Source: Podarcis filfolensis
Taxonomy: Eukaryota
DNA: 64,000 bases
NCBI GenBank assembly: GCA_964270895.1
Contig: OZ185444.1
Strand: one strand, 5' to 3'
A program made the position numbers and the translations under genes. Below the pieces are notes generated by a model. The model was not told the DNA's origin and searched no databases. It saw only the letters and a program-made list of their open reading frames with translations. Shown here one piece after another: positions 3,304 to 60,495 of the stretch; the first letter of the stretch is position 1; each line of letters begins with the position of its first letter.

Positions 3304-3656
3304 GGGACATGGGTGGCGCTGTGGGTTAAACCGCAGAGCCAAGGACTTGCTGATCAGAAGGTCGGCGGTTTGAATCCCCACAACGGGGTGAGCTCCTGTT
3401 GCTTGGTCCCTGCTCCTGCCAACCTAGCAGTTCAAAAGCACGTCAAAGTGCAAGTAGATAAATAGGTACCACTCCAGCGGGAAGGTAAACGGCGTTTCTG
3501 TGTGCTGCTCTGGTTCGCCAGAAGCGGCTTAGTCATGCTGGCCACATGACCCAGAAGCTGTATGCTGGCTCCCTCGGCCAATAAAGCGAGATGAGCACTG
3601 CAACCCCAGAGTCGGCCACGACTGGACCTAATGGACAGGGGTCCCTCACCTTACCT
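3304..3656 (+). mobile_element. Sauria SINE (Squam1), full length, 11-bp TSD
   Basis: Head gggacatgggtggcgctgtgggttaaaccgcagagcc and (acctt) tail. TSD taatcacagtt at 3293-3303 and 3657-3667. Confidence 0.93.
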
Positions 3657-5330
3657 TAATCACAGTTACCTGTGGAAAAGCCAGTTTGCCTTCAGACTTT
3701 TAGTTGTTTGTAGGAGGAATTCAAACACATATCAGAATTCTAGGTTTACACAGTTAATCAACTGGTTGACTAAATACACTTGAATACTCTTTGTTCTATA
3801 ACCTCCCTGTAAACAAATCAAAACACATCTCAATAAAAAGCTAGTCTTCCAGCAGAATTGGAAGACTGGAGATGATAGTTCATTGATACTTATATTTACT
3901 TTATGTTAAAGTCCTTATTTATTTATTTTTAGGCTGAAATCTGTGTAGACATGCATAGGAATGTAATGTTGTCGAATACACATCTGTAATGGACTCCACA
4001 GGAAACGTCCTTAAATGATGGATGTGAAACAATGTGAAACAATGAAGCAATATTTACAAATGCAGTTTGGGCTCTTTGTAGATATAATTGAAAGGGACAA
4101 ATTATTTTACTGGAACCTCAGAGAGGAATTAAAGCTCATCCAACCACATCAACTTCTAAAGTAGGAGCAATAGTTGCTGCTGGCCTTTCAGATGCATTCA
4201 ATGATTTTTCTATGACTTCACTCACATTCTTTGGCAACTGCGAGGCTCGCAAATGTTTCATTTTTATTCTCGTTCGCCTTTGATCGCAGAGCGAGTCACG
4301 GACCATGACCCATGTGGCATTCGTAGCTAAGCGAAGTCCTTAGCACTTTCCCTTACTTCACCCATGGTCTTGCTGATCTCTTCATCACTTTTTTAAAAAG
4401 TGCTTTAAATTATTTAACTCAATTACAGTTACATCCTGCAGCTTTAAGCAACAGACGCTCAATACCAGCCTCAAGGAGATGACACAAGCATTGGGTCTTG
4501 TTATTGTCATATAAAGACATGCTTTATCCGAGGGGTGGCTAACCTGCGGCCCTGCAGATGTTATATTCTCACTCTCATCCATCTCAGCTGGCATGACCAA
4601 TTGCCAGGGATGATGCAAGCTAAAGGGCTATAGATAGTCACCTCTGCTTTACGAGTCACTGTTTGTCCTCAGATCTGAAAGATGAGAATAAGCTGCAGCT
4701 GGATTTCTGAACGTCAGTTTTGATGCCTGAATACAAAGTGCATACTGTGTCAGTTGTGAAGGCTGCATGCTCTCATAAATAACATCGCTTCCTTTTAAAG
4801 TGGAATAGATTAGTGCCTGGGAACAGGCCGATGCCCTAAGGGAAGTTTGTTGGCTTACTATTCTAGACTGCAAAGCTTTAGACTGAAGGAAAAGGTACCA
4901 CATTTCTGAATGATCCCTAATGCAAAACCAGCCAGCCAACAAATACCTGCATGCAATAAACCAGGACATCAGTGAGATGTTTCACACAAGCCTCTCTGAT
5001 GTGCTAATTTACTACAAGCTGTTTTCACATTTAAAAAAATATGTCCTGCCCTTGCAGTCTGAATTGGGACCCAGTTCACATAATGGGTCAAATGGCAGGG
5101 GGTGCTTACTGAGGACACAAGAAAGCACAAACAGGCAGCCTAATTCCCCATCTGACTTGAGGAACCTTTTTGTGTCCAGTCCAGAAGTTGAAAAGTGTGA
5201 GATGCTGCTGCTGTTTCCTTGTGGCTGACTGACAGCTGAGAATTGGCAGTGCTGGGAAGGAATTTTACCTAGGTCCCTGACTGGTGACTGTAATCTGCAG
5301 TTTATAGCTTACCCGTAGCAAATCATAATA

Positions 5331-7975: not shown

Positions 7976-8439
7976 GGTCTGTATAGTTAAAGCTATGGTT
8001 TTCCCAGAAGTGATGTATGGAAGTGAGAGCTGGACCATAAAGAAGGCTGATCGCCGAAGAATTGATGCTTTTGAATTATTGTGCTGGAGGAGACTCTTGA
8101 GAGTCCCATGGACTGCAAGAAGATCAAACCTATCCATTCTTAAGGAAATCAGCCCTGAGTGCTCACTGGAAGGACAGATCCTGAAGCTGAGGCTCCAATA
8201 CTTTGGCCACCTCATGAGAAGAGAAGAGAAGCCTCCCTGGAAAAGACTGTGATGTTGGGAAAGATGGAGGGCACAAGGAGAAGTGGACAACAAAGGACGA
8301 GATGATTGGATAGTGTTCTCGAAGCTACCAGCATGAGTTTGACCAAACTGCGGGAGGCAGTGGAAGACAGGGGTGCCTGGCGTGCTCTGGTCCATGGGAT
8401 CACGAAGAGTCGGACACGACTAAACGACTAAACAACATC
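7976..8439 (+). mobile_element. BovB LINE 3' fragment inserted into a hairpin MITE
   Basis: Encodes IVKAMVFPEVMYGSESWTIKKADRRRIDAF... and ends in an aacaaca tail. TSD atattggccaa at 7944-7954 and 8440-8450. A gagaa duplication near 8225 causes a frameshift. Confidence 0.95.
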
Positions 8440-8509
8440 ATATTGGCCAAACTTGAAGGCTAGAAGTTAGCCACCCCGTTTTAATGTATCCCTAGCCTCT
8501 AAATTTAAA

Positions 8510-11395: not shown

Positions 11396-11935
11396 AAATT
11401 AAAAGATGCCTGCTTCTTGGGAAAAAAGCAATGACAAACTAGGCAGCATTTTAAAAAGCAGAGACATCACCTTGCCAACAAAGGCCCGTATAGTTAAAGC
11501 TATGGTTTTCCCAGTAGTGATGTATGGAAGTGAGAGCTGGACCATAAAGAAGGCTGATCGCCAAAGAATTGATGCTTTTGAATTATTGTGCTGGAGGAGA
11601 CTCTTGAGAATCCCATGGACTGCAAGAAGATCAAACCTATCCATTCTTAAGGAAATCAGCCCTGAGTGGAAGGACAGATCATGAAGCTGAGGCTCCAATA
11701 CTTTGGCCACCTCATGAGAAGAGAAGACTCCCTGGAAAAGACCGTGATGTTGGGAAAGATGGAGGGCACAAGGAGAAGGGGACAACAGAGGATGAGAGGG
11801 TTGGACAGTGTTATCGAAACTACCAGCATGAGTTTGACCAAACTGCGGGAGGCAGTGGAAGACAGGAGTGCCTAGCGTGCTCTGGTCCATGGGGTCACGA
11901 AGAGTCGGACATGACTAAACGACTAAACAACAACA
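11396..11935 (+). mobile_element. BovB LINE 3' fragment, the longest in the window
   Basis: Encodes ...SILKSRDITLPTKARIVKAMVFPVVMYGSESWTIKK... with a (caa) tail. Has a 7-nt deletion near 11668. No TSD seen. Confidence 0.95.
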
Positions 11936-14900
11936 TTTGTCAGATTACATAATACTCATCTGCTCAGACGAGCCTTTGGCAAATGAAGGATATTTGTGAA
12001 ACTAATAAGTTGCATCTTTTAGTGTGATCCGGTCTCCTGTTATCAGTTGTTTCATTCTTTTAGTTATGTTTGTTACTGCTAAGCTTCCTGAATAATAATG
12101 CAGTTAGCCACCTTACGCTTTAGGAAAGGCCTGGGTATTATTTTTTAATATGTTAATTAAACTAATGTAATATATGACTTATGGCCTTCCCAGCTGGCCG
12201 AATAAGTCTCTGCTTTGGGTGTCTGTTACTCTCTTAAATTATTTTTGTTGCATTCTGTACATCGCCTTGAGACATGTGGGGAAGGTGGTAAATAAATAAA
12301 TCATAAGATAAAAATTATGTAGATAGGTTCCCATTTGGCTCATGAGTGGGAGGCAGGAAGTGGATAATGAGCGAAGCTGATAGGCTAGCTAGTAGATTTC
12401 CCCATTGTCATTTCAAAAGAGAAATGTGATACCTGACAAAAGCCATCTGAGCACACAGCTCCCATATAGTTTTATAATGTGAAATTGATTGATGGAAAAT
12501 GGATAATGGTTGCTATGTTAAGAAAAATGGTGGATTATTCTCCTCTCCTCACCTTCCCTCCCAGCAGCTACTGGCTCTTGCAGAGGCTTGGGGTCAGATG
12601 CTTGATTAAGTGAATTATAGCTAAAATCCCCTAGTATAAACCATGTCATGCCCCAGGCTACCCGAAACAATGCTCCCTGTTTTAACCCATAATGGGTAGT
12701 TGCATTTGGTAAATGGCTTAATCATGGCAACATAAATATTTATGGGAGAATTGTTCCAATTAAGGTATAAGCTTGTTTAGATGCTATCAGACAGGGTTTT
12801 CCCAACAAGAAAATGATTGTTAAGAGACATTAGAAAGTGGTTAAACTCTGGAGGAAGGAAAGGTCACTGGACCAATGTCATGGAGGCTTTTAATATGGTT
12901 CAATCTAATGGCTGAACCTTCCCCCCCCCCTTTCAGTTTAAGAAACTGACCCTTTCTACAATGAAAAGAAAACCTTAATGAAATGAACTGCAGTCAGCAA
13001 ACTGCACTAAGTCCTTTATATCTTGGGTTTATTTTGACATAATCGTGAACTGCATATGTTTCTGTTCAATTTAATCAGACAAATACAGTGGTTTGCATCC
13101 AACTGTTATGCTCAGAGTAAACTCATTGAAATGGTTACACCTAAGTTAGTAATGTTTGCTAATTTCAATGGGTTTACTCTGAGTAAGACTGATATTGGCT
13201 ACAACCCAGTAATACTAATAAAGTTTAAGGGATTTAATCCAAAAGTTTTAGGCTAGAAAAATTATAGCAAAATTTAAAACTGTAGCTTTGTCTTGTCCAT
13301 GGATGTTTATAAGCATCCTCTTCCAAAGAGGATTGCAAGCTTTGTCGAATACCACACTCTGCCAATCAGTCTTATCACATCCTCTTGTGTAACCTGCGAA
13401 ATATTTTTAAAGGAGTGTTTAAGATGGGTTTGCAATTTATGGTGATCAAGGAAGTTTTCGGTTCTCATTTGAAGGTTGTCGGCACCATGAAGGGTTTAAA
13501 AATAATTGGACAAATAAGAGAATCTCAAATTATTTTCCATCAACCTTAATTCTTTTGGAGTCAATAATTTCACAGCAAGCATATTGCAGAACAAGCACAA
13601 CATGTTCACATGCTATGCCTTCACAACCTAACCATTTTATGGAAATGATATGCAAATCACATCACACTCCTACGATCAAACATGCAAATTAACAGAGGCC
13701 TCCAACTTGCAATATGTTTTGAATGACTGTTTGGGTTGAATGTGTTGCCAACACCTGGATTACAGTTTTTATTACACTAGTGTAAATCTAGAAAAATGGA
13801 ATTAATTCCAGATCTTTCAAAATTTCTCGTTTTGCCACTGGCACTGTAGTGCATAATTGCAATGCACACAAAAGATTAAAGGTATTTGTCTGGTCATTCT
13901 GCTTTTTGAGGTCTTCTGTTAAAAACGGTGGGTGACATAGGTACTCTCTTGCTTGTCAAGGTGTCAAACGAATAAAAGACTTTTAATAGGTTTCATTGGG
14001 GTTACATTAGAGTGGATTACCTAGGCTTTAACATGCAGTTTGTAAGCAATTCTACAGTGGAAGAGTGGTATAAAATTTTAAAAAGTACAGTTGAAGCAGT
14101 GATGTTCTTTGGGGAAATAAATATATGATCTCTGTGAAGCTTCATTAATCTCCGGAGCAGTGTGAGTGAGTGTCTGCCATATGGTATATGACTCTAAAGG
14201 AATAGCACAAAGGGAAAACTGAAAATCTGGATGATTTTTTTTAAAAGGAGTGTTCTGCAGCACTTCTGCCTGGGAGCAAAATCCATTGCTTTCCAATTAG
14301 AAATTATGTTTTTTGATGTAAGAAATCCTGTAGCTGACATAACTGATGTTCTTCATTATCGTTGGTTGTCTCTTTTTGAAGCTAGCAGCTGTAACACATT
14401 TCAGGCCAGGCCATTACACACAAGGAGTTAAACACTGCATCCATTTTATTACAAATCCAGCATTTATCTGCTCGTCAATGTAAACCAGCAACCAAACAGC
14501 AGATGAGGAATATGGCTTCATACAGGAGCTGGCCCTCGTTCATTCAAAATGGCAGAATAAGCAAGAGGTGAGGAAAACGCTTACCAAAGAGCATAGCTAG
14601 GGCAGGCAAGGCTCCAGGTCAATGAGACACCTGAAAAAAATAGGAATTATATACGTAATGCTCAGTCTTTTACATAATTATATCTGCAGGGAGGGAAGGA
14701 CAGTATTGTTAAATGTTAAATTTGCACCTAATTTGGAATACCAGGTATTTTCTTAGCTAGCCACTTCTGACTACATGTCCCAGTTCATAAGCTGTGATGA
14801 TGTAAATATTAATACAGTGATTTCTTCATGAACATGATCTATATGCACTTGTTACATATGCACATAAGTGATAATGATGTATACCCTCTTAAATCTTTCA

Positions 14901-22426: not shown

Positions 22427-23727
22427 TTTTTTTGGGGGGGGGGAGTTGTGAGAAAGTTTGCTTGTGGCTAAGCAAAGAAAAAAGATTCTAAGTAGACTAT
22501 ACTGAAACACAGTTTTACAAGGAGAAGGGAAAAAAAATGCATCCCTTCGTTATGAAGCCTTAGAATAAGTATGGATAGTATTTCACAAGACAATACAAAG
22601 AAACACATTTTGCTGAATGCCTTGTATGCTAAACGCGTTAAAGAGAAATTGGTTCTCGCTGGTTTTTTCTTTCAAGGGTGTGTGGCCGTGTGCAGACTTT
22701 GACATTATTTTCACCTTTTCCTCAGAACAGCAAGTTCCATTTCATAGACAGATGTTAAGGTCAGAAAGGAACACTGAAACCATGTAGTGTGACCTCCCCA
22801 CACCCCACCCCCAGTTACTGAGGCCAATTCCTTTTCCTTTGGCTATTTCTAACATGAGAGTCACTGACCTGCATTTGAAGTAAGCATATCGCTTAGAAGA
22901 ATGTCATAATCTATCTTTTCAAGTTGTGGAGAATCCACTAGATTCTTGGGCAATCTGGTTGCTGATAGACAGTTGCATCTTATTTTCAGTGTTTACGATG
23001 TTTCAATCCTTATACACCCATTTTCTTAATTTGTTTAAGATAACTGACGTATAATGAGATCTGGAGTCTCTTTTAACAACCCCATTTTCTTCGAGGGAAG
23101 CTTTTTTATGTTTGTGATAATCACACACCAAACATGAAAGATGCTTTTTTTAAAAGACAAGGTAGAGCCTCTACCAATCAGTGTTGACTGCAGATGGGGA
23201 ATTTCAGGCTGGGGGGAAAGTCAGACCGCCAAGCTTCTCTTTCTAGCCCTTGGACACTCGCCACACCACCTACTCCCAGGCCATACCCCTCACTGGCCTT
23301 TATTGTCACACTCTGTGAGTGTTTCTGCCTGGCTGGTGTGTCCTTGAACTCTAACAATGCTTCTTGCTTGCTTGAGTGAAGAATTGATGCACCCTGCTGT
23401 GCAAAGGTAAGAATCACCTGCTGCAAATATGTATAGAAGCTAGCCTACTGTATAAAGGCAAAATTCCCATTTGTTGCTCCTCCCACTTTTGCCACTGATC
23501 CAGCCCTTCAATGGGATAAACCCACAGAAGGTTGTCTAGAAGGGAATTTGGCTGAAAATCTCCCTCTACCTCCATGTGTAGACATTACTGACCAACAGTC
23601 TGATGTGGATATAAGACTGCTTTGGTTATTGTTGTTATCTGGTTTTTACAAAGTCTAATGTTTCCTTTATGCAAACTTATATTGAATGTATTATTCTTTT
23701 TTTATTTATTTAAAAAGTAAAATAAGT

Positions 23728-23867
23728 TGCTTTCGAACTGCTAGCTTGGCAGAAGCTGGGACAGAGCAATGGGAGCTGACCCTTTTGCACAGATTCGAAC
23801 TGCCGACCTTCCGATCAGCAAGCCCAAGAGGTTCAGTGGTTTAGACCACAGCGCCACCCGTGTCCCC
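23728..23867 (-). mobile_element. Sauria SINE 5' half (different subfamily), 3'-truncated
   Basis: Minus strand reads ggggacacgggtggcgctgtggtctaaaccactgaacctcttgggcttgctgatcggaaggtcggcagttcgaat...gcagttcgaaagca, with no tail. Confidence 0.9.
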
Positions 23868-23892
23868 ATTTTGTTGTTGTTGTTGTTGTTAT

Positions 23893-24072
23893 CAGTGTTT
23901 TTTTCTGGGAGGATGCAGGGGTACGCATCCCCCTAAACATTTTGTGAATCTTTGTACTTTTGCCGATTTACTGTATTTATTTTTCCTGATTTGAACTATA
24001 AAATGGTGATTTGTTTTTTTTAGTGAAAATGAAAGTTCCCCTAAACTTTTTTTTAAAAGAAAAAAAACACTG
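23893..24072. mobile_element. hAT-type MITE (cagtg...cactg)
   Basis: Related to the 28181 and 6829 elements (ggggtacgcatcccctaaacattttgtgaatc). Flanked by ttgttat repeats, a 7-8 bp TSD with an ambiguous boundary. Confidence 0.85.
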
Positions 24073-24610
24073 TTGTTATCTGGTTTTTACAAAGCCCAAT
24101 GTTTCCTTTATGCAAACTTATATTGAATGAATTATTCATTTTTTATTTTAAAAAAATTCTCCCCATTTCTGCACAGTTCTGTAAAATAGTTTTTAATAAC
24201 AAATCTACGAATTTAATTGTTGACTAACTTTTTCTCCACAGTAGCAAATGCTACAGAAAGATAGCTAAGTTTCAGTAGCTGCCAGTGTGATTGGGTACCC
24301 TCCCAACACGTGTCACAACAGCTTACATAGGTGGAGCAGGGCAGGGCAGCAGCAAGGCTAAGGTTGCGTGGACGCACACTTTGTCACAACAGTGCCTCAT
24401 CCCAGGCCCTCTGAGGTGATCTGCAGTGATACCAATGCCAGGAGGGCAGTTCTGCAGCTCTGCCTCACCACACTGGCCACTACTGGGTAGTTTTACTAAC
24501 GAAACATTTAAAACGTGACTTTGTCCAGGCAGCTCTCCCAGGAAACAAAGCATAGATCACACTCGCACCATGCATTTAAAGCATTTATACCGCTTTAACA
24601 GTTGCAGAGC

Positions 24611-35409: not shown

Positions 35410-36699
35410 TACATCAATTCAAATGGTAATCATAAACTTCAGAATGACTGTTGTAGCTGCCCATTGGTGCTGGCTTTTGGCTTGCAATTGGGGGGGAGGG
35501 GGAGCAATGTCGTGATGTTGCACACACAATGTTGCTACTGGATATTGAGAGGTTCCCTTATCAACTTTGGGTGGGGGGAGGCTCAAAGTGCATCCAATCC
35601 CGGGAACTGGATCCTCTCGACCCAACCTCCTTTCTCTTTTTCTTCCTCTTTTTCTATTTAGCATTTTTGAAGAAGTGGTGGAAAGCCCGAGGCCATCAAC
35701 CTGGACTCCAACTACCACCAGCCCCAGTCAAAATGACCAATTATCAGACATGATGGAGATTCTAGTGTGTGACATTTGGAGGGACACAGACTACACACAC
35801 CTGCTTTAAAGACTAGCTCTCTGGCACAATGTTTTCCTCCATGGAATGAGGAATGAAAAATTCATCTGTTTTGTTGGAAATTCCAAGGAATCAGAATTTA
35901 TAGGAATCTGGTGTTCTTCAGATCTCTACATCTCAAATTCAAGCATATATTTTTTTTAGTCCACTATAATATTTTCCACATGTTCCTGCCCTCCTTTCTG
36001 TGGGAAGTGTTCCAGAGAAATACCACTAAAATAAATGTCATGTTGAAGCTGGATCTAGGCCCATCTATATTCTAAGCTCAGAGTATTTAGATTTCCACTC
36101 AAGTTAATTTTAATGAGAAATAAAGTGAAGAATCTCTGGCCTTTGGACCTAATTAGGCCCACCAGACCTCAGAGTCATTTGGGGTGAACCACATTTTTTG
36201 GGTGAACCTTGTCATATTGCAGCCAAAATGTTTTACACCCACACACCCCTTTTTCTGCTGCCGTGCAACAGAAAAATATTCTTTTGCAGCTGGCCAGATC
36301 CCTTCTCAAACCCTGATCTATAGAATATTGTGCCTTATATTAGAAGTCAGTGGTGCAACTTTTAAGTGATTGATTGAGATTTTAGGTTCTGGTCCTCTTT
36401 TCAACACATCCTCCATCTGTTCATTGTCGCTGCTGATCTGTGATGTGCTGCTAGCAGACAGCAAAGAAACCAGCTCACTTAGGCACTTCACTAGGAGCAG
36501 GGGCAAAAGTTTAATTTGAGATAGTGTCAGTTATTGGTACTGAAACACCTATTATCATATGGCTGAGGTTAATCAGCGGCCAAGAAGACTTGTCATAAAT
36601 GAACATACAAACATTGTTACATTATGTCTGTAACATATATGTAGAGAGAGAGGTTATAATATAAAATACAACTCTTTGGCTTATTTGTTTGATAGTTGT

Positions 36700-37125
36700 G
36701 CAGATGCCAGATTATCCAATGCAACTACTCTATTCTGAACCTAAAAATGGAAAGCGTACTGCTGGTGGTCAACATAAGAGGTTTAAAGACTCTCTCAAGG
36801 CACAGCTAAAAAAATGTAGTATAAACACCAACAACTGGGAAACACTGGCCTGCGAGTGCTCCAATTGGAGAACAGCCTTTACCAAAGGTGTCATGGACTT
36901 TGAAGACGCTCGAACTCAGGACAAAAGGGAGAAACGTATTAAGAGGAAGGCACACTTGGCAAACCCTCACCATAATCAATTCCCACCCAGAAACCTATGT
37001 CCCCACTGTGGAAGGACGTGTGGATCCAGAACTGGCCTCCACAGTCACTTACGGACTCACTGTTAAAACCATGTTTATGGAAGACAATCTTACTTGGCTA
37101 CAAGTGTTTGCCAAAGAAGAAGAGG
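36700..37125 (+). mobile_element. RTE-clade LINE 3' end (non-BovB) with a C2H2 zinc-finger C-terminus and 42-bp flanking duplication
   Basis: Encodes MPDYPMQLLYSEPKNGKRTAGGQHKRFKDSLK...WETLA...CPHCGRTCGSRTGLHSHLRTHC*, followed by a (gaa)n tail. Direct repeats at 36658-36699 and 37126-37167. Confidence 0.92.
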
Positions 37126-37932
37126 AATATAAAATACATTTCTTTGACTTATTTGTTTGGTAGTTGTACTAATAGCATTCATTTAGATTAAAAAATTAAA
37201 GAACAATCTGGTTCCTAGTATGTGCTATCTGAACACAACTGGTTATGCTTATTAAAAAGAAAGAGTAAAAAACAACAACCTTGGTCCTGTATTTGTGGTA
37301 GCTGAGAAGACCTCCTAAGAATTTAAAATTGTCCCATAGCCAAGAGCAGTAACTGAAGGGCCCGCAAGCTTTCTAATCACATATGAGGTCCTACAGTTAA
37401 TTTGTCCTTCATAAGAAATGTATCTTTCTATTTCTCATTTCTTTGACCCAAGGGCAATATAAGAAAAGATGCAGATCCATTTTTACAATATGCATACCTT
37501 CCCTGAGCAGCTTAAAAAAGACCAACCTCATGGACAGAAAATAATTATTTCCTTCTGGACCGAAAGGAAGGACAGTAAAAACAATTTTTTGTTATTGCAC
37601 AGAAGGAATCAGCAGAGGCCATGAAGGAACATCTGCTTTAAGAGATGCTTGACATGTAATCAGGACATATTTTGGGGACAGAAAAAGTTGCGCGGCAGCA
37701 AAAGTCAAACAGAGTATTATTATTTTTTAAGAAAATGAAAGGGCATTCATGGGCAATGCGTTGGGCCAGTTTCCAACAAATAGCTATACATAAAAGTGCC
37801 ACAGAACTTTTCATCAGTCGCCCTTAAAACAACAAAGGTTAAATGTCTCTTGTAAGTTCCACTGGGCAGAATTCACCTAAGAAACCTCATCAGTGGAAAC
37901 CTCATGGAAGGGCTTCCAGCTTGTGCAAAGGG

Positions 37933-48681: not shown

Positions 48682-49450
48682 CAAGGCTGTCTTTACCCAG
48701 GGCTGCAAGGGGTGCGGCGCACCTGGGCGCCGAATTCGATGGGGCGGCAAATGTATCGGCAGCAGTGAAAAGCAATGGAGCGAAAGTCCCCCCCCATCAC
48801 TCTGTTACTCCGTAGCGTCAAATATTCCCGATGAGTCAGGAAACAAAAGCAGCTATTTCTGCTGCATTGTTACAGGTGAGCAATTTCCCTCCTCAAAAAA
48901 AGGTCAACAACTTCTTTGGCTTTTCCCTTTCCAAGCTCAACAACTTTGGCTCCCTCCTCCCAAAATAAGCTCAACAACTTTGAGTTGGCCCCCCTAAAAA
49001 AATTGGGGGCGGCTAAACTAAATTTGGGATGTGGGTGGCGCTGTGGGTTAAGCCACAGAGCCTAGGACTTGCTGATCAGAAGGTTGGCAGTTCGATTCCC
49101 CGCAACGGGGTGAGCTCCCATTGCTCGGTCCCTGCTCCTGCCAACCTAGCAGTTCAAAAGCACATCAAAGTGCAAGTAGATAAATAGGTACCGCTCTGGC
49201 GGGAAGGTAAATGGCATTTCCATGTGCTACTCTGGTTTCGCCAGAAGCAGCTTAGTCATGCTGGCCACACGACCTGGAAACTGTACGCCGGCTCCCTTGG
49301 CCAATAAAGCGAGATGAGCGCCGCAACCCCAGAGTCGGTCACGACTGGACCTAATGGTCAGGGGTCCCTTTACCTTTACCTTCAAACTAAATTTGGGGGC
49401 GCTGGGCGGATCTTTGCACCCCAGCGGTGCATATGCTAAAGATGGCCCTG
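48682..49450. mobile_element. Non-autonomous hAT element hosting a Sauria SINE
   Basis: Termini caaggctgtcttta/taaagatggccctg. Perfect 8-bp TSD tttctagt at 48674-48681 and 49451-49458. Confidence 0.9.
49026..49383 (+). mobile_element. Sauria SINE, full length, nested in the hAT element
   Basis: TSD aaactaaattt(ggg) at 49015-49025 and 49384-49394. Has an (accttt) tail. Confidence 0.95.
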
Positions 49451-58721: not shown

Positions 58722-58843
58722 CAGTGACTAGCTACGGCTTTCCAGGGTTTCAGGCAGAGAATCTACCTGGAGATGCTGGGGACTGAACCTGGAATCTTCT
58801 GCATGCAAAGCAGCTGCTCTACAACTGAGCTACGGCCCTTCCC
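58722..58843 (-). mobile_element. tRNA-Ala(TGC)-headed SINE (Squam2-like), 5' part
   Basis: Minus strand reads gggccgtagctcagttgtagagcagctgctttgcatgcagaagattccaggttcagtccccagcatctcca and continues into the SINE body (cctgaaaccctgga). Confidence 0.8.
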
Positions 58844-59038
58844 TAGTGACCTCACTGTATGCCACAGCTTATGCAAAAAGAGACAATTAATAGATAGCAG
58901 CAGGCTAAGAAAATGAATTTCATCACAACCTCCTAGGGACTCTGTAAGCAGTAATCTCCCAGCCTTCGGGTTAAAAGTTACCTTCAAAATTTCCAGAGGT
59001 GTTTTGTTGTTGTTGCAGCTGCTAGGACACATCTAAAG

Positions 59039-59380
59039 GTAAAGGTAAAGGGACCCCTGACCATTAGGTCCAGTCGTGGCCAACTCTGGGGTTGTGGCGC
59101 TCATCTTGCTTTATTGGCCGAGGGAGCCGGCGTACAGCTTCCGGGTCATGTGGCCAGCATAACTAAGCCACTTCTGGCGAACCAGAGTAGCGCACGGAAA
59201 TGCCGTTTACCTTCCCGCTGGAGCGGTACCTATTTATCTACTTGCACTCTGACGTGCTTTCAAACTGCTAGGTTGGCAGGAGCTGGGACCGAGCAATGGG
59301 ATCTCACTCTGCCACGGGGATTTGAAGTGCCAACCTTCTGATTGCCAAGTCTTAGGCTCTGTGGTTTAACCCACAGAGCC
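59039..59380 (-). mobile_element. Sauria SINE missing about 11 nt at the 5' end, flanked by a 120-bp direct duplication
   Basis: Reverse complement of the 3304/49026 copies. Flanks at 58919-59038 and 59381-59500 are identical at 117 of 120 positions. Confidence 0.95.
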
Positions 59381-60357
59381 TTCATCACAACCTCCTAGGG
59401 ACTCTGTAAGCAGTAATCTCCCAGCCTTCGGGTTAAACGTTACCTTCGAAATTTCCAGAGGTGTTTTGTTGTTGTTGCAGCTGCTCGGACACATCTAAAG
59501 CAGTCTTAAAAACTGAATTTGCTTCTGGTTGGTGTAAGACAAGTATCCAGCATTCTACCTTCCAAAAGTTGATGGAGTACAACTCCTGTCATCCCTGTCC
59601 ATTGACTGTGCTGACTGGGGCTAATGGGAGCTGGAGACCAAAAGCCATCTGGAGGGCTCCACCTTGGCTATCCATTATAACCTATTTTGAGTCTAAAACA
59701 TCCACTTTTTTGCACCATGTGGGCTCCAGAGTGCTCAAAATGACTGGAAGAGATCCACGATGTATTGAAATAATGCATGGGAACTTCCTGAAAAAGATGG
59801 AGAAACAATGTGTGGGAACTTCCTGAAAAAGATGGAGAATAGATTGGGCAATAGATGCGCGCAGCAGTCTGTTTTTCAGATTTCGGTTAGGCATTTTTTT
59901 TCTCCATATTTGGCAGCACTGAAGAAAATTTGCCTGGCATTTAGAAGACAAAATGCTTTGTGTGTACAAATTTTATCCAACGCTGCCAAATAAGGAAAAC
60001 ATGATGATTTTCGCATGAAAGGGTGGGCAGTTGTCATTAAAGAAATTATTCTGAAGTCTGCATGCATTGGCTGTTCAACTTCTTCACGTGGAATAAATGG
60101 AACACACATACAGATGGAAGATAGTATGAGTCTTGCTGCTCATAGATCAGGTGAGAGGCAGGTGATGTTTGACTTAGCAATTACATCCCAACAGTGCACT
60201 GATTGCTGCAGAGGACGACATCCAATGATGCCATGCTGCTCACAAACCAAATGTCCACTGGTGCAAATAGGACTTGCCCATGCTGTACCCTCCAGAGCAG
60301 GTGGGGGGCGTGGGTGTTACAGGGTGAAGGAGAGGAAAGGGGAGTTCCATTGCATCA

Positions 60358-60495
60358 CAGTGGTTCTCAACCTGTGGGTCCCCAGATGTTGTTGGACTAC
60401 AACTCCCATCATCCCTGAGCTCTGGCCTTGCTAGCTAGGGGTGATGGGAGTTGTAGTTCAACAACATATGGGGACCCACAGGTTGAGAAAGGCTG
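60358..60495. mobile_element. Palindromic hAT-type MITE with a SPIN-like left terminus
   Basis: cagtggttctcaacctgtgggtcc...ggacccacaggttgagaaaggctg with actacaactccc/gggagttgtagt arms. TSD not evident. Confidence 0.82.

Follow-up and report, generated by a model that had tools for sequence, protein, structure and literature searches.

In the window, by which we mean the whole 64-kb stretch of DNA that was analysed, a Sauria SINE lies on the minus strand between two copies of a 120-bp stretch of host sequence, and the three parts form a structure of 582 bp (Table 1). The two host copies align over 120 nt each without a gap and agree at 117 of 120 positions. The original prediction had given this same figure, and our ungapped recomputation reproduced it. 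The duplication was also said to sit exactly against both ends of the SINE, which is what we find: The identity of the copies breaks off at once outside them, where T at 58918 faces C at 59380 on one side and G at 59039 faces C at 59501 on the other. Around the locus, the coding potential is confined to short chance ORFs.

Table 1. Features of the duplicated unit and the SINE between its copies, in window coordinates.
Feature	Coordinates	Strand	Remarks
Left copy of duplicated host unit	58919..59038		117/120 identical to 59381-59500; 3' TSD copy in SINE orientation
Tail/target overlap, 5 nt	59034..59038		TAAAG on the plus strand, CTTTA on the SINE strand; last tail repeat or target
Sauria SINE, 342 bp	59039..59380	-	Head at 59380, (ACCTTT)n tail at 59039; recognized by similarity to two copies in the window
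Right copy of duplicated host unit	59381..59500		5' TSD copy in SINE orientation; keeps four CpGs
T5 run	59508..59512	- (SINE strand)	Upstream of the 5' repeat, at 9-13 nt from its first T; thymine stretch of the Tn-TA signature

The pairwise difference between the two copies is 2.5% and comes from unit positions 58, 68 and 106 (58976, 58986 and 59024 in left-copy coordinates). At these sites the right copy reads CG, CG and CG, and the left copy reads AG, CA and AG; a single CpG is left in the left copy, against the four of the right copy. The original prediction had remarked that all three differences fall at CpGs kept in the right copy. This stands insofar as the right copy indeed has CG at all three sites, but C/A transversions account for two of the three differences, and classic CpG deamination, which gives transitions, is therefore not the pattern. 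The one-sidedness of the changes, all of them in one copy, is not significant (p = 0.25, n = 3). Another question raised at the outset was whether the 120-bp unit is itself a dispersed repeat. Within the 64-kb window this is rejected: A blastn search at word size 7 returned the two copies and no further one. A self-comparison of the whole window gave just four direct-repeat pairs of at least 40 bp and at least 88% identity lying no more than 8 kb apart, and the 120-bp duplication is therefore not part of a background of such repeats.

Sauria SINEs have a tRNA-related 5' region with pol III boxes and a 3' region in common with the Bov-B LINE. The element between the copies is a nearly full-length member of this family, as had been predicted; over its full length it is 89% identical to a copy at about 49030-49381 and 87% identical to a copy at 3306-3658, both on the plus strand. 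It begins with GGCTCTGTGGG (GGCTCTG), where both other copies begin with GGGACATGGGTGGCGCTGTGGG (GGGACATGGGTGGCGCTG), and this later start means that about 11 nt of its 5' end are missing. At its junction with the right copy, the SINE 5' end has no bases in common with the host sequence. The 3' end reads ...CCCTTTACCTTTAC and then CTTTAG, and the other copies end ...CCTTTACCTTTACCT; the tail of Sauria_POM is given as (ACCTTT)1-2 (PMC13295347, Table 4). We found at least four private differences of this SINE from the family majority (59082, 59161, 59188 and 59249), which amounts to about 1.2% on one lineage. The direct repeats around the two other copies measure 11-14 bp (AAACTAAATTT, up to AAACTAAATTTGGG) and 11 bp (TAATCACAGTT), in line with the 11-14-bp target-site duplications (TSDs) originally claimed for them. 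Since both have TSDs of normal length, the family behaves canonically nearby.

Neither ARAGORN nor Rfam reported a tRNA in 59039-59380; the SINE head still aligns with the heads of the two other copies. The sole tRNA hit, a tRNA-like sequence at 58768-58839 on the minus strand, scored 32.2 bits against the Rfam tRNA family, which exceeds the gathering score. It forms the head of another SINE of high copy number, some 80 bp to the left of the 120-bp unit, and the contig depth on it is 10^4-10^5 in four of four runs. In the four lizard runs, the summed contig depth on the Sauria SINE reaches 10^6-10^7, against about 10-100 on the unique flanks, indicating that this family has a very high copy number. 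In its head, the segment 59295-59345 has clustered differences from both other copies in the window, and the matching of many genomic contigs ends there, at 59301-59307, with a depth that is still about 10^6. Because of this depth, and because no differences from the majority are listed for the segment, it looks like a subfamily variant and not like private decay. Within the 64-kb window, we found no Bov-B 3' end resembling the tail region of the SINE.

The SINE tail was originally described as merging into the duplication through taaag, and the 5-nt overlap TAAAG is present at the 3' junction. This overlap can be read both ways, as the last tail repeat or as target, and the true TSD therefore measures 115-120 bp. 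An overlap of 5 nt or more between tail and target would be expected by chance with a probability of about 0.001. Elements of the RTE clade, including the Sauria SINEs of Podarcis muralis, have a Tn-TA insertion signature, in which SINEs ending in (ACCTTT)n have a T at the start of the repeat, usually followed by A (PMC6007223, PMC13295347). In SINE orientation, the sequence at the present junction is CAGTTTTTAAGACTG|CTTTAGATG, with T5 at P-13 to P-9 and TTTA at the repeat start. Of all window positions, 0.45% have both T5 at P-13 to P-9 and T at P1; the distance window was picked after the site had been seen. By the maximal-repeat definition of the cited papers, the first base of the TSD is C, not the Sauria-typical T, and the T's come at positions 2-4. 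Given these caveats on the distance window and the first base, the 3' junction has the appearance of a usual start by endonuclease nicking and tail priming. The site of the second break (GATGAA|ATTCATTTTC, minus strand) does not obviously repeat the first-nick signature. We also looked for a separate short TSD inside the long repeats and found none: The last 10-14 nt of the unit are absent between the SINE head and the right copy.

We compared the locus with four sequencing runs, all of them available as Logan short-read contigs that break at the SINE, and none of these contigs covers the left copy, the SINE and the right copy together. One run, X1, has the same organism label as the window and comes from a separate, older study; its flanks diverge by 0.4%. 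The left-flank contig of X1 stops at 58948, and a contig of 1003 nt extends from exactly 59381 through the right copy into the flank. In a simulation of the k = 31 graph, a filled locus predicts contig ends at 58948 and 59381, and the empty-site model gives one unbroken unitig. X1 is thus independent support for the junction of the SINE head with the right copy in another individual. The original prediction had named long reads or PCR as the way to exclude an assembly artefact; the X1 contig ends, taken from short-read contigs none of which spans the structure, match what the filled locus predicts. Of the three variable sites, 59438 alone has a row in the difference table, and no difference between X1 and the window is reported for it.

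The other three organisms (X2, X3 and X17) have a flank divergence of about 2%. A contig running from flank through unit to flank, as expected of an empty site, was not found in the four runs of SINE-broken short-read contigs. The right-flank contig of X3 starts at 59471, which leaves 30 nt (k-1) to the end of the right copy; those of X2 and X17 start at 59468, with a substitution 30 nt further on, at 59498. Contigs would be expected to start at such positions if the context of left copy and SINE tail is also present, and the starts therefore fit two copies in these organisms. Judging from these contig ends, the insertion is probably common to the three related species and older than their split. 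The 2.5% by which the copies differ and the private substitutions in the SINE are in keeping with such a shared insertion.

We had considered X2 as a single-copy site: Its left contig is unbroken to 59035, and the depth on 59398-59458 is about 0. This candidate was withdrawn, because its contig has a depth of 27.3 where the flanks have 17.5-17.8, consistent with two copies collapsed into one, and because its right-flank contig starts exactly 30 nt before the copy-distinguishing base, G at 59498. In addition, the X1 contig crosses three branch points that the simulation predicts, so an unbroken contig does not exclude a second copy. Further to the right, the window has a 35-bp tandem duplication (59767-59836, 91% identical); the X17 contig skips 59778-59812, which indicates a single 35-bp unit in X17 and thus a small copy-number difference between species.

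From these observations, we suggest that the 582-bp structure was probably made by one event of target-primed reverse transcription, with a second-strand break at 115-120 bp from the first nick. The Bov-B endonuclease would nick the plus strand within ...CATCTAAAG|CAGTC..., at 59034-59038 of the single original unit, a site whose match to the signature is itself observed. This site is one helical turn from the A5 run on the plus strand, which corresponds to T5 on the SINE strand. The 3' end freed by the nick would then pair with the (ACCUUU)n tail of the Sauria SINE RNA and prime the cDNA. Since the plus-strand end ...CATCTAAAG-3', which is the 3' end of the left copy, stands directly before the antisense SINE tail, it can be identified as the primer of the first-strand cDNA. 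The opposite strand would be cut 115-120 bp to the left, between 58918 and 58919, in place of the usual 10-13 bp. A minus-strand break at this position gives 3' overhangs of about 120 nt on both ends, and the outcome is therefore a duplication and not a deletion. The cDNA, still lacking about 11 nt of the SINE 5' end, would be joined directly to the minus-strand end, without microhomology. Once both overhangs were filled in, the host unit would stand on either side of the SINE, one copy at each end.

The geometry of this scheme is the standard TSD layout, lengthened about tenfold. The second break may come from the enzyme of the element, from a pre-existing nick, from a repair intermediate or from a discontinuity at a replication fork. 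The ages of the two parts also agree roughly: The duplication differs by 2.5% pairwise and the SINE by about 1.2% on one lineage. The giant-TSD reading of the original prediction, by which the SINE insertion duplicated host DNA through a distant second-strand break, is thus supported, with the exact ends, the tail overlap, the T-run and the absence of a short TSD all bearing on it. The structure is a rare outcome of a known mechanism; it is no new mechanism.

Four other explanations can be weighed against this event. In one of them, an error of replication or repair, such as template switching or break-induced replication, made the duplication, and the SINE or its cDNA was captured as filler at the junction. 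Capture of retroelement cDNA during repair is known in general, and the slight 5' truncation and blunt 5' junction seen here do resemble end joining. Such fillers, however, are usually 3'-truncated and without an endonuclease signature, whereas the present tail is complete, overlaps the target and stands at a Tn-type site, and we consider this origin unlikely. With a pre-existing lesion as the second break, the two models would become one. Alternatively, a tandem duplication of the 120-bp unit might be the older event, with the Sauria SINE entering its exact junction later and without a TSD of its own. Small tandem duplications do occur in this region, such as the 35-bp pair whose copy number varies between species, and the three differences between the copies would permit a duplication somewhat older than the SINE. 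This course of events would nevertheless need a hit on the one junction among about 120 positions together with the absence of the 10-13-bp TSD typical of the family. There is no short repeat between the SINE head and the right copy, and this lack of a separate short TSD speaks against entry into an older tandem repeat. The nick signature and the tail overlap, moreover, mark a start that depended on the endonuclease in the normal way, and a TSD is the usual accompaniment of such a start. We therefore regard an older tandem duplication as quite improbable.

The reverse order, in which the SINE inserted normally beside a single unit and the unit was copied to its other side afterwards, would require breakpoints that match both SINE ends to the base. 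If the right copy is taken away, no 10-13-bp TSD remains, as the left copy ends in ...ACATCTAAAG and the right flank starts with CAGTCTTAAA; there is hardly any chance that this order is the correct one. About equally remote is the explanation that the second copy is a false duplication introduced by the assembler. It draws on the fact that no contig spans the whole structure in data consisting of contigs only, but the two copies differ at three sites, and false duplications do not normally stop exactly at both ends of a transposon. The X1 contig ends at 58948 and 59381 likewise fit the filled locus and not the empty model.

Rte-1 of C. elegans, an RTE-clade element, is said to have very long TSDs. 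The papers citing Youngman et al. 1996 do not repeat this claim for Rte-1, and we found no confirmation of long TSDs in the RTE clade in the literature searched. A TSD of more than 100 bp is thus seen here in an element family and an enzyme clade for which that literature held no earlier description. In the RTE clade, the commonest TSD lengths are 10-12 bp (Ichiyanagi and Okada 2008, as cited in PMC4245944 and PMC6007223), and TSDs longer than 20 bp have been handled as a separate category (PMC4245944). The canonical insertions of Sauria and Bov-B (PMC6007223, PMC13295347) resemble the present one in the SINE family, in the (ACCTTT)n tail, in the overlap of tail and target and in a run of thymines that precedes the TSD start by about one helical turn. 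Unlike the present one, with its 115-120 bp, they have TSDs mostly of 13 bp or less. The scans for TSDs of Sauria and Bov-B took perfect repeats of 10-49 bp only (PMC6007223, PMC13295347), and a 120-bp repeat with three mismatches was therefore out of their reach.

Long TSDs are better documented for human L1. Those of more than 100 bp make up less than 10% of the events recovered in HeLa cells, which are repair-proficient, and 57-91% of the events in cells deficient in nucleotide excision repair (PMC5223499). Large L1 TSDs in cultured cells were described by Gilbert 2002/2005 and Symer 2002, according to PMC5223499 and PMC2912911. The second primer for long L1 TSDs was proposed to be a distal, unrelated nick or an exposed end arising in replication or repair, and the long repeats were proposed to recombine later and delete the insert (PMC5223499). 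Extremely long TSDs have been tied to 5'-truncated L1 inserts (PMC2912911). The Sauria locus is like these events in that a target-primed, 5'-truncated insert is accompanied by a duplication at least 10 times the modal length, ascribed to a distant second-strand break. The L1 events concern an autonomous element in tumour cell lines, whereas the element here is a non-autonomous SINE fixed in the lizard germ line, with an enzyme of the RTE/Bov-B clade in place of that of L1; its insertion is apparently several million years old. Unusually long duplications around a retroelement have also been described for HERV-K (HML-2) loci (PMC5488345); these are LTR elements inserted by an integrase, and with a mechanism unrelated to the present one they are alike in outcome only.

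The length of a TSD is a record of where the second strand was broken, which is the least understood step of LINE and SINE integration. A natural germ-line case from the RTE clade with a canonical first nick indicates that the two breaks can uncouple outside L1 and outside cultured tumour cells. Present TSD surveys of Bov-B and Sauria, restricted to perfect repeats of up to 49 bp, are blind to the long class. The value of the locus is chiefly that of one data point toward a genome-wide test of how the second strand breaks; for a single locus outside coding sequence, no functional consequence is evident. A further idea, which we put forward tentatively and think rather doubtful, is that long TSDs are a recurrent second integration mode of the Bov-B-driven Sauria SINEs in wall lizards. 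The second primer would then be a pre-existing discontinuity roughly 70-175 nt off, such as a repair nick or, on the nascent lagging strand, the end of an Okazaki fragment; the element itself would not make the cut. If this were true, duplications on the 100-bp scale would arise whose direct repeats could later delete the SINE precisely.

Other features of the window may be recorded here. A 5'-truncated 3' end of a LINE occupies 426 bp on the plus strand (36700-37125); beyond the end of its ORF (...CPHCGRTCGSRTGLHSHLRTHC*) come a short 3' UTR and a tail rich in GAA. Pfam gave weak C2H2 zinc-finger matches only for this LINE. A 42-bp direct repeat (36658-36699 and 37126-37167, 38/42 identical) abuts it exactly at both ends, a TSD longer than normal. 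A pair of 87-bp direct repeats lies at 23630-23716 and 24071-24154, about 92% identical with one 3-nt gap and 354 bp apart. Between them are a minus-strand SINE-head fragment (23728-23858) and about 210 bp of other sequence, which includes an apparent third partial copy of the repeat end. The stretch 23630-24154 could have arisen by an older insertion with a long TSD or by some more complex rearrangement. A 461-bp direct-repeat pair (7981-8441 and 11488-11936) is 93% identical over copies 3.5 kb apart and could be LTR-like or represent two copies of one element. Close to the Sauria locus, a MITE-like palindrome at 60364-60489 has 53-nt arms that are 94% complementary and a 20-nt loop. An 80-nt segment related to it at 73% (59562-59641) lies 820 bp upstream of the palindrome, just to the right of the duplicated unit.
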